Assembly: GCF_048593235.1 (NCBI RefSeq)
Contig: NC_133621.1
Location: forward strand, 228,615,238-228,679,237
Direction: 5' to 3'
From: Sminthopsis crassicaudata
Taxonomy: Eukaryota
DNA length: 64,000 bases
The notes under the pieces were generated by a model. That model did not search any database and was not told the origin of the DNA. It saw only the letters and a list, made by a program, of their open reading frames with translations. The position numbers were made by a program, and so were the translations under genes. How positions within the stretch are numbered: position 1 is the first letter of the stretch; each line of letters begins with the position of its first letter. Positions 38,702 to 56,170 of the stretch are shown here, piece by piece.

Positions 38702-39163
38702 ATGGCTCAACGATCGGTCAGCATCAAGTCCTCTGGTGGCAGCCGGAGCTTCAGCGCCTCTTCGGCATCACTGCTCCCAGGCTGCCGGACCAGCTTCAGC
38801 TCTGTGTCTGTATCCCAGGGAGGGAAGAGTGGGAGTCGTCTTGGGGGTGGTTTTGGGACCAGGAGCCTCCACAATCTTGTAGGCAGCAAAAGGATCTCTG
38901 TCAGTGGGGGATACCGCTCTGGCAGAGTTGGCTATGGGGGTGCTTGTGGTTTGGGATATGGGGGCATGGGATACAGAGCTGGGGGATATGGATTTGGAGG
39001 GGGAATGATGGCAGGATCTGGAGGCATCCATGAAGTTACAGTCAATCAGAGCCTACTGGCTCCCCTCAACCTGGAGATTGACCCATCCCTCCAGAAGGTT
39101 CGGAAGGAAGAGAAAGAGCAGATCAAGACTCTCAATAACAAATTTGCCTCCTTCATAGATAAG
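38702..39163 (+). CDS. KRT90: KRT90-like exon 1
   Basis: 154 codons, ...[19 protein letters not shown]|gtaaga. Confidence 0.9.
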
Positions 39164-54100: not shown

Positions 54101-56170
54101 ATGTAAGTCCTTTATTTAGAAATTTGCACCAGTATAGGATGAGAAGCAGCTACTTGACTTGGTAACCTAACATGTGAAAAAGATGGCAGCTTAGAATGAT
54201 CACCTATGGCCAAATAGGAAATAGGAACCAAAAGTGTAATTTCTTCTTGTTCAGTCGTTTATTTCAATTGTGACTAATTCTTCATGAACCCATTTGGTGT
54301 TTTCTTTGCAAAAACTATTAGAGTGGCTTGTCATTTCCTTCTAGATCTTATTTTACAGATGAGGAAACTGAGGCAAACAGGGTTAAGTGACTTGTGTCTC
54401 GCTAGCATGTGTCTGAGATCAGATTTAAACTAAGAAGATGAGTCTTCCTGACTCCATTCCCAGCACTCTATCTACTGTACCACCAAGCTGCCCAAGAGTA
54501 TAATACAACTGCTAAGAATAAAACAAAACAAAAAATAGACAGAAAAAAATCCAGAAGTCAACATAATTTTAGGTTGTATTATAATCACACTAATAGATGA
54601 TAACATAACACTTTAAAGTCCATCAGTTATTTTACTCTCCTCATCCAATGTGATCATCACATTAAGCCTGTGACATGGAACTGGGTAGTATTTTTATAGA
54701 TTATTTTATACTCTAAACCCCAGAGAGATTCAATAACTTGTCAGTATCACACTGCTAGTGAGGGTCAGAATTAGAATTCTAGTGTGTCACCTGTTGTGAT
54801 TCATGTGTTTCTTAGATCAGATCATGTCTACAGTATTCTGTAAATAGACTATTCACTTCTGGCTGTCATGCTTTAAGATAAACAGTGGCAAAGTAAGTTA
54901 GTGAGGAATATGGTCATCTTGTTGCTATGAGGAATAGTTGAAAGAACATTGGGCGTTTTGCCCCAAGCCTTCGAGACCAAGACCCAATCTCTTTTTTAAA
55001 GAATTTTTCATGTTGAAGAAGGAGACAATGTATTGTAGTTTGTTCCAGAAGGGAGAACTGACCTTAAAAGGGAAGTTGGGAGACTGATTTCAGCTCAATA
55101 AAATAAACATCTAGCATGCTATAGTGTATTAAAATCCAACTTTGGAGTCAGGAAGATATCTTATTTCAGATACTTACTAGCTGTGTGGACGAGTCATTTA
55201 ACCTTTGTCTGCCTGTTTCCTCATCTATAAAATAGAGGTAATAATAATAATACCTACCTCCCAGGCTTGTTGTGAGCATCAGATAAGGTAATGTATATAA
55301 AACACTTTGTAAAGCTCACATAGATAAACATATATGATATGTATAAATATAATATCAATAATAAAATTAATATGTATAAATATAATATAATAATTAAAAT
55401 AATATAATAATATTAATAAATATAATACAATATTGATATATTGTACAATAACATGTTGATATAATATAGTGGATAAAATATAATCACATCATACATTATA
55501 TAATTAACATGTGATAAACAAAATGTATATAAAAGTTTATATATATAAATACTATTATTGTTGTTGTTCTTGTTAGTAGTGTTAATCTCTCTCAAACTTT
55601 AAAATGGGAATATGATATTGCTCTGTCTACCTAATAAAGTTATTGTATAAAATGAGATGCATGTCCAACATGAAAGCAGGTTGATAATCGTAAATCACCA
55701 TACGGAGATCAGGCATTAGCAATAGCTGGCCATACCCATTTTCTTTCCATGTGTCTTCCTCTGAATTTCCCAGTGAAACAGGGAAAATTTGAATGGTCTA
55801 TTGAGATACTTGGGAGAGAGGTACCAGGAAAAAGGATTTGGGATGTGGAGGGAAAAAATTAACAACTAGGAGACACTAAAAGGCACGAAAAAAAAGCTGA
55901 GATGCTCTTGTATTCTGAAAGAGATGTAAATCCTATCATTCATCATAATTCTTTTTTCTCCCCACAGCTGTGGTTACTTCTGGAGGGAGCACTGGATATG
56001 GAGGCAGTGGTGGCGTCTGTGTGGGCGGAGGTGGTCTCAGCAGCAGTCTCTGCTATGGAAGTGGGGTTGGAGGCTTTAGCTCCACCAGCGGGCGCAGCAT
56101 GGGGGGCAGCAGCTCCAGCATGCGCATCATCTCCAAGACATCATCCACTAAGAAAAGTTATCGGAGCTAA
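38702..56170 (+). CDS. KRT90: Type II keratin, probable KRT90 (KRT124) orthologue, complete 9-exon gene, 525 aa
   Basis: join(38702-39163,41561-41769,46548-46608,47545-47640,50006-50170,51084-51209,52055-52275,53457-53491,55968-56170) = 1578 nt, GT-AG, no stops or frameshifts. The keratin call is certain; the symbol rests on position between KRT75 and KRT82, where human KRT90P (KRT124P) and mouse Krt90 lie. Confidence 0.75.
41561..41769 (+). CDS. KRT90: KRT90-like exon 2
   Basis: 209 nt (2 codons shorter than in KRT6/KRT75), [15 protein letters not shown]. Confidence 0.9.
42441..42501. repeat. (AC)n(AT)n microsatellite, KRT90-like intron 2
   Basis: Seen directly. Confidence 0.95.
44053..44208 (+). 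mobile_element. Young tRNA-derived SINE (WSINE1-like)
   Basis: A box (tggcacagtgg), B box (gagttcaaatc), cttaacacttcctggctgtgtgaccctgggcaagtcacttaacccc, A-rich tail, imperfect aaaataa(c)acata target-site duplication. Confidence 0.85.
45800..46270 (-). mobile_element. Marsupial L1 ORF1-region fragment
   Basis: T-rich antisense L1 with tttggggcttgtgac..tatctatggtcggattcttttcctttgcttactcatttt. Confidence 0.55.
46548..46608 (+). CDS. KRT90: KRT90-like exon 3
   Basis: 61 nt, [20 protein letters not shown]. Confidence 0.9.
47091..47262. mobile_element. Non-autonomous DNA transposon (MITE, hAT-type)
   Basis: Perfect 11-bp terminal inverted repeat AGAGGTTCTTA...TAAGAACCTCT; related fragments near 11690-11860, 20600-20720, 21485-22075. 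Confidence 0.65.
47545..47640 (+). CDS. KRT90: KRT90-like exon 4
   Basis: 96 nt, [32 protein letters not shown]. Confidence 0.9.
50006..50170 (+). CDS. KRT90: KRT90-like exon 5
   Basis: 165 nt, [15 protein letters not shown]...WYQSK. Confidence 0.9.
51084..51209 (+). CDS. KRT90: KRT90-like exon 6
   Basis: 126 nt, [24 protein letters not shown]...LKKQ. Confidence 0.9.
52055..52275 (+). CDS. KRT90: KRT90-like exon 7
   Basis: 221 nt, [13 protein letters not shown]...[11 protein letters not shown]. Confidence 0.9.
52390..52710 (-). mobile_element. L2 3' end, KRT90-like intron 7
   Basis: aatcaatcaa..atttattaggtacc..gtcaggcactgggctaag..ctgccctcaaag. Confidence 0.7.
53326..53387. repeat. (CA)n(TA)n microsatellite after a long CT-rich tract, KRT90-like intron 7
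   Basis: Seen directly; about 70 nt upstream of the exon 8 acceptor. Confidence 0.95.
53457..53491 (+). CDS. KRT90: KRT90-like exon 8
   Basis: 35 nt, [11 protein letters not shown]. Confidence 0.88.
54246..54493 (-). mobile_element. Mar1-type CORE SINE
   Basis: gttcagtcgttt..gaaccatttgg..gagtggcttgtcatttccttct..acagatgaggaaactgaggcaaacagggttaagtgactt. Confidence 0.75.
55325..55560. repeat. AT-rich low-complexity tract, KRT90-like intron 8
   Basis: Degenerate (TAA)/(TA) repeats, almost no G/C. Confidence 0.85.
55847..55885 (+). repeat. 39-bp direct repeat, copy 1
   Basis: ggagggaaaaaattaacaactaggagacactaaaaggca. Confidence 0.95.
55968..56170 (+). CDS. KRT90: KRT90-like exon 9 (tail)
   Basis: ccacag|CTGTGG; ends [14 protein letters not shown] at 56168-56170. 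Confidence 0.9.

Follow-up and report, generated by a model that had tools for sequence, protein, structure and literature searches.

The DNA analysed here is a stretch of 64,000 nucleotides from the fat-tailed dunnart, Sminthopsis crassicaudata (NCBI RefSeq assembly GCF_048593235.1, contig NC_133621.1, positions 228,615,238 to 228,679,237 of the forward strand), which we call the window and whose first letter is position 1. The subject of this work is a type II keratin gene of nine exons located at 38702-56170 on the + strand. It is very probably the dunnart orthologue of KRT90 (KRT124, formerly Kb15), an intact and selectively maintained type II "soft" keratin gene. Other keratin genes accompany it on the same strand, and the order along the window is A (K5/K6-type), B (K75), the focal K90 gene, and D (K82-like).

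Gene Model and Conserved Motifs

The coding sequence has 1578 nt, is closed by a single terminal stop, and encodes a protein of 525 aa with 7 Cys, 59 Gly, and 60 Ser; all eight introns have GT-AG borders. Exon 1 (38702-39163, 462 nt, 154 codons) codes for the Gly/Ser-rich head, H1, and the start of coil 1A, and it matched the Pfam family Keratin_2_head (PF16208) with E = 7e-24. The remainder of coil 1A, a short L1 linker, and the start of 1B are encoded by exon 2 (41561-41769, 209 nt), which matched the Pfam family Filament (PF00038) with E = 9e-17. Exon 3 (46548-46608, 61 nt) is followed by exons 4 (47545-47640, 96 nt), 5 (50006-50170, 165 nt), and 6 (51084-51209, 126 nt), these last three also with Filament matches. 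Exon 7 (52055-52275, 221 nt) holds the end of coil 2; its Filament match was found at E = 4e-29 and its top match in the PDB was coil 2B of keratin 5. The peptide of exon 8 (53457-53491, 35 nt) is of the same type as in gene A, and exon 9 (55968-56170, 203 nt including the stop) encodes a Gly/Ser tail which bears the C-terminal motif of the K90 group. The protein is a type II keratin by its PF16208 head, its PF00038 rod on exons 1, 2, and 4-7, and the rod-end motif at residue 436. The lengths of exons 3-7 are known to be conserved among type II keratins (PMC5573215), and the focal gene, with nine coding exons, matches that pattern. Exons were searched singly against the libraries, while the joined 525-aa protein was only compared locally.

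A TATA box (TATAAA) lies at 38606-38611 on the + strand, 96 nt before the ATG, and an AATAAA polyadenylation signal at 56739-56744, also on the + strand, 569 nt past the stop; the equivalent signal of Sarcophilus is located 557 nt past its own stop. In the protein, the motifs GSKRISVS, LNLEIDP, and EKEQIK start at residues 61, 122, and 137, respectively, and a motif scan of the spliced product showed that EREQIK and PVCPP are both absent from its 525 aa. A first-pass annotation, made from the letters alone, had described a complete frame with eight GT-AG introns, an exon 2 of 209 nt, 7 Cys in 525 aa, a TATA box, and an AATAAA signal, and all of these were recovered. The presence of GSKRISVS, EKEQIK, and LNLEIDP and the lack of PVCPP, which it had also listed, were confirmed on the spliced product. 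Its statement that the L1 linker is 2 residues shorter than in the neighbours was borne out, given that exon 2 has 215 nt in genes A and B, and the K5/K6-like character it gave to coil 2 and exon 8 agrees with the keratin 5 match of exon 7 and with the exon 8 peptide type shared with gene A.

The product was found to be identical (100% over 525 residues) to XP_074126420.1 (P0286), the "keratin, type II cytoskeletal 75-like" protein of S. crassicaudata. This residue-for-residue match to a RefSeq prediction independently validates the gene model; the gene is already predicted in RefSeq, but under a misleading name. One and the same marsupial orthologue is called K5-like in the Tasmanian devil, Gracilinanus, and an older koala model, 6A-like in the opossum and sugar glider, 75-like in the dunnart and tammar, and cochleal-like in Antechinus, Dromiciops, wombat, possum, bilby, and the newer koala model. 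The name KRT90 was given to none of the RefSeq marsupial orthologues in the P0211 cluster, and two UniProt entries of the K90 family, from Jaculus and Nannospalax, are titled Keratin 90. For the opossum orthologue (Kb15), PMC6759161 cites Zimek & Weber 2006. With respect to opossum Kb15 and the RefSeq marsupial models, the focal gene has no sequence difference from the Sminthopsis RefSeq protein, and only the names differ; Monodelphis is 96% identical. The marsupial orthologue, its likely role, and the gene model are all on record, and only the naming and the reading of the character states add anything. The practical value is small: a naming fix, as marsupials carry an intact and constrained KRT90/KRT124 under inconsistent RefSeq labels.

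Orthology to KRT90/KRT124

The family was retrieved by a search with exon 1 against the representative library, which returned mostly short open reading frame fragments, followed by word searches restricted to the head and the tail. Later searches were queried by the relatives P0071, P0168, and P0078 and by marsupial and sauropsid proteins, leaving out the human proteins P0267 and P0429. A maximum likelihood tree of 55 proteins was computed under LG+C20+F+G4 with K8 as outgroup. In this tree the focal protein joined that of Sarcophilus (100/88) inside a marsupial clade (100/99), and this in turn was placed within a mammalian K90 clade (100/99) whose members include Jaculus Keratin 90, rat, and a donkey protein of 521 aa. 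The donkey protein terminates in the horse K124 peptide, and its length equals that of horse KRT124 (PMC5573215).

The C-terminus of the focal protein fits the K90/K124 consensus RI(I/V)SKTS(S)TK(K/R)SYRS, a motif common to all K90-group proteins found. The C-terminal peptide of horse KRT124 has been given as RIISKTSTKRSYRS, and that of mouse KRT90 is quoted in the same work (PMC9662738). Compared with mouse KRT90 (formerly Kb15, 4732456N10Rik) and horse and dog KRT124, the dunnart gene belongs to the same clade, has the same 9 exons and short L1, ends in a nearly identical C-terminal peptide, and occupies the same slot between KRT75 and KRT82. The order of the genes in the window matches the human order, KRT6 - KRT75 - KRT90P - KRT82. 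Since the tree, the C-terminus, and the synteny are three independent lines and agree, we assign the gene to KRT90/KRT124.

Over the full length, the focal protein was 98.3% identical to that of Sarcophilus, 97% to those of Petaurus and Dromiciops, 96% to those of Monodelphis and Gracilinanus, and 93-95.6% to those of koala, wombat, possum, wallaby, and bilby, all of them intact. Taken together, 11 other marsupial proteins were 93-98% identical and intact, with lengths of 523-530 aa, and the koala and wombat gene models have 552 aa. Full-length identity to placental K90-group proteins, among them the two titled Keratin 90 and the donkey protein of 521 aa, was 77-85%, and the other type II keratins compared gave 55-76% over partial lengths. 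Identities were also calculated by domain from the local full-length alignment, in which "rod" refers to exons 1-6 only. Placental K90 gave 73-79% in the head, 90-94% in the rod, and 73-80% in the tail; for K75/K5 the values were 58%, 76-80%, and 59%, and for the hair keratins K85 and K84 they were 42-44%, 61-66%, and 30-46%, in the same order.

Conservation and Selective Constraint

The ratio of nonsynonymous to synonymous substitution rates (dN/dS) was calculated from two marsupial coding sequences, those of Sarcophilus (L001) and Dromiciops (L002), which were recovered exactly from their loci; exon 7 was omitted. Both orthologues have the same nine exons with identical exon lengths, including the exon 2 of 209 nt. 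Pairwise dN/dS was 0.10-0.17 when Sarcophilus was the partner; with Dromiciops it was 0.04-0.06, at a dS of 0.25-0.34. At least 12 marsupial species, from five orders, have an intact orthologue.

Sarcophilus and Dromiciops show hardly any change in the TATA box and the 200 bp before the ATG, and the segment 38502-38701 showed identity of about 90% or more among dunnart, Tasmanian devil, and monito del monte. Its conservation greatly exceeds that of synonymous sites (dS about 0.3), and the segment may therefore be a core promoter or an enhancer that serves expression in the claw unit. The sequences provide strong evidence that protein and promoter alike are under purifying selection.

These results bear on what the first-pass annotation had proposed. 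The identity as KRT90/KRT124 found support in the clade (100/99), the C-terminal motif, and the synteny. The annotation had also considered that the protein might group inside another named clade, for example as a K5/K6 duplicate, and it was found within the mammalian K90 clade (100/99). The claim of an intact, functional orthologue under constraint is upheld by dN/dS of 0.04-0.17, well under the value near 1 that had been set against it.

Ancestral Character States

The combination of features that had been called "mixed" was analysed with an alignment of the L1 region and a motif survey. Marsupial K90, sauropsid K90-like proteins, and K8 from fish and turtle have the short L1, EKEQIK, and LNLEIDP; hair keratins have the short L1, EKEQIK, and mostly LNLEIDP. 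Most placental K90 proteins carry the short L1 with EREQIK and LHLEIDP, in contrast to the EKEQIK and LNLEIDP of the marsupial copies, and mammalian K5/K6/K75 have an L1 longer by 2 residues, EREQIK, and LNLQIDP. Because the K8 outgroup has them too, the short L1, EKEQIK, and LNLEIDP are ancestral states. The two-residue insertion in L1 was shared by all the other epithelial type II keratins sampled, that is, K5, K6, K75, K72, K74, the K5/K75-like proteins of sauropsids, and the cochleal-like proteins of birds and frog, and it maps neatly to a clade of these "other epithelial" keratins (100/98), with K90 outside it. Aardvark K90, like the marsupial and sauropsid copies, keeps EKEQIK and LNLEIDP; from this retention it follows that the K-to-R change in placental K90 was separate from that of K5/K6/K75.

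K90 and the other epithelial keratins were grouped in the tree with support 100/98, separate from the hair keratins (100/98). Approximately unbiased (AU) tests, in which the protein alignment of the tree was reused, rejected a constraint joining K90 to the hair keratins, which costs 18.8 log-likelihood units (p = 0.004), and marginally rejected a branching of K90 before the hair/epithelial split (p = 0.037). The number of Cys was 7 in the focal protein, 5-8 in mammalian K90, 1-3 in sauropsid K90-like proteins, and 14-33 in hair keratins; mammalian hair keratins have been described to carry 20 or more Cys per protein (PMC7086170). With its 7 Cys and its position outside the hair clade (100/98), the focal gene is not of the KRT81-86 kind. 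It shares with KRT81-KRT86 the short L1, EKEQIK, LNLEIDP, and an adjoining position in the cluster, but differs from them in its Cys content (7 versus 14-33), in a head and tail only 30-46% identical, and in its clade. Nor does it show the 215-nt exon 2, EREQIK, and LNLQIDP of KRT5/KRT6/KRT75. With these it has in common a Gly/Ser-rich, Cys-poor "soft" type II character, a rod (exons 1-6) of 72-80% identity, and a similar type of exon 8, whereas they differ from it in the longer exon 2 and its two additional L1 residues, in both motifs, in belonging to a separate clade and, for K75, in a C-terminus of the KF(V/I) type.

On the tree and the motif survey, K90 is an early-branching, slowly evolving epithelial keratin. 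Its lineage kept the ancestral type II states while the K5/K6/K75 group changed, and its intermediate look is explained by how little it changed and not by a link between soft and hard keratins. Therefore, of the "hair/simple-keratin" features pointed out in the first reading of the sequence, the traits themselves stand, but as retained ancestral states, and their hybrid meaning was discarded. The same applies to the proposal of an evolutionary intermediate from epithelial to hard keratins, as the traits occur also in K8 and in sauropsid K90-like proteins and the tree (100/98 with the epithelial keratins) and the AU test (p = 0.004) contradict it. For keratin evolution, this means that the apparent mixture of epithelial and hair traits in K90 consists of ancestral characters retained in a slow, early-branching epithelial lineage.

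Sauropsid Relatives

Full-length comparison of the focal protein with sauropsid keratins named "cochleal-like" or "6A" (P0218, P0220, P0223, and others) gave identities of 69-74%. The short L1, EKEQIK, and LNLEIDP recur in these sauropsid proteins, and their C-terminus resembles that of K90 (MKIVSKT..KKS.RS, for example, MKIVSKTTSTKKSIRS); they differ from mammalian K90 in having fewer Cys (1-3). In the maximum likelihood tree, the K90-like proteins of turtle, crocodilian, and lizard formed a clade (100/98) which was sister to mammalian K90 with a weak support of 73/50. In Alligator (L003:10001-20355) and in the loggerhead turtle Caretta (L004:10001-21284) the K90-like gene has neighbours on the same strand, K75-type upstream and hair-keratin-type downstream, the latter with K84 and K85 as best matches. 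This conserved synteny makes orthology between sauropsid and mammalian K90 likely, and in that case the K90 lineage would be at least as old as the amniote ancestor. A wider proposal is that KRT90 is amniote-wide, possibly older, and branched off before L1 gained the insertion seen in the rest of the epidermal type II keratins sampled, one frog protein among them; we hold it tentatively and put its chances slightly short of even. If it were true, amniotes could have had a soft keratin dedicated to the "claw bed" for as long as they have had claws, and marsupial K90 would stand near the ancestral keratin of the epidermal type II group.

Possible Function

In mouse, the KRT90 protein is located in the nail matrix and bed, and a C-terminal frameshift leads to nail-bed dystrophy (PMC9662738). 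Horse K124 is known from hoof lamellae (PMC6759161), and KRT124 is intact in dog and horse (PMC5573215). By analogy with these placentals, dunnart K90 may have a role in the claw or nail bed, as the first-pass annotation had suggested. It would pair with a type I keratin, which is K42 in horse and mouse, to form 10-nm intermediate filaments, and these would strengthen the epithelium of the claw bed and matrix, the anchor of the hard claw plate. The dunnart is a laboratory marsupial and could serve to examine whether the therian ancestor already had the nail-bed role known from mouse and horse.

A search of sequencing runs with the last exon and the 3′ untranslated region (UTR) returned 10 small runs from 4 studies that contain 64-100% of the sampled words, whereas their sister runs in those studies contain none. 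This pattern fits tissue-specific RNA and is taken as a hint, not as proof.

Some points weigh against an intact KRT90 with a maintained claw-bed role. The null mouse for Krt90 of the International Mouse Phenotyping Consortium has no reported digit lesions (PMC9662738), so the importance of the gene may vary. The values of dN/dS come from two marsupial coding sequences with exon 7 excluded. The claw-bed role and the K42 partner would be carried over from mouse and horse, and the runs holding the last exon and 3′ UTR are only guessed to be RNA, none being recorded as such.

Alternative Explanations

A marsupial-specific duplicate of K5, K6, or K75 that merely resembles K90 would suit the RefSeq names (K75-like in dunnart, "5-like" or "6A-like" in other marsupials) and the resemblance of exon 8 and coil 2 to K5/K6, as seen in the keratin 5 match of exon 7 and in the exon 8 type of gene A. 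However, the focal gene falls in the K90 clade (100/99) and outside the 100/98 clade of K5, K6, K75, K72, K74, and K79, and it is devoid of the L1 insertion, EREQIK, and LNLQIDP, which every mammalian K5/K6/K75 protein examined had. In head and tail, its identity is 58-59% with K75 or K5, as opposed to 73-80% with placental K90, and the true K75 gene is the upstream neighbour B. Such a duplicate, contradicted by tree, motifs, and synteny, was rejected, and we regard it as exceedingly improbable. A little more room, although still very little, is left for a transitional form between soft and hard keratins, sister or stem lineage of K81-K86. K90 and hair keratins have in common the short L1 (209-nt exon 2), EKEQIK, and LNLEIDP, the gene adjoins the hair-keratin block beside a K82-like gene, and mammalian K90 is somewhat richer in Cys (5-8) than its K90-like counterparts in sauropsids (1-3). 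The K8 outgroup from fish and turtle has all three traits as well, hence they are ancestral and uninformative on kinship, and the focal protein has 7 Cys versus 14-33, with a rod 61-66% identical to K85/K84 versus 80% to K5. The position of K90 with the epithelial keratins (100/98) and the AU tests (p = 0.004 for K90 with hair keratins, p = 0.037 for branching before the split) decided against it; the hair-keratin sister reading was rejected on the tree and the first of these tests.

A further reading is that the dunnart gene, in spite of its intact frame, is silent or on its way to losing function, like human KRT90P. Primates lost the KRT90 gene (PMC6759161), and the matches of the last exon and 3′ UTR are confined to runs guessed to be RNA. 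Against this, dN/dS is 0.04-0.17, no splice site is disrupted, promoter and TATA box have been kept at a divergence where dS is about 0.3, and intact orthologues exist in at least 12 marsupials. The concentration of the last exon and 3′ UTR in 10 runs of 4 studies (64-100%), with sister runs that have none, fits tissue-specific RNA, though unproven. A decaying gene was rejected given the low dN/dS, the intact splice sites, the conserved promoter, and the intact marsupial orthologues, and we consider it most unlikely. The orthologue of KRT90/KRT124 is, in our opinion, the reading that fits the locus.

Neighbouring Genes

Gene A, a type II keratin gene of K5/K6/K75 type, is located at 6495-10620 on the + strand and is compact (about 5 kb); its exon 2 lies at 8080-8294 (215 nt) and its exon 8 peptide near 10585. 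In the maximum likelihood tree its rod was placed among K5, K6, and K75, the join with K75 being supported only at 40/3. Gene B, of KRT75 type, lies upstream of the focal gene at 26279-36490 on the + strand. Its rod translation is contained in P0240, a K75-like protein of Sminthopsis, its exon 2 has 215 nt, and its tail begins near 36383. Gene B and the focal K90 gene are both labelled "K75-like" in RefSeq. Between genes A and B there is a run of 144 N at 22167-22310, which corresponds to an assembly gap or to masked sequence. Downstream, exon 1 only of gene D, a KRT82-like hair keratin gene, is found at 61185-61607 on the + strand before the end of the window; its best named match was K82 (Hb2), P0417. 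Gene D is the start of the hard-keratin block directly 3′ of K90.

Among the hair keratins retrieved, the P0078 group consists of an "Hb5-like" protein of 494 aa, distinct from K85 (507 aa), which was found in bats, horse, carnivores, afrotherians, and marsupials (bilby and koala). Judged by its length, this group is probably the KRT89 of dog and horse, a gene that is a pseudogene in human. The KRT89 proteins of dog and horse have 494-495 aa (PMC5573215).

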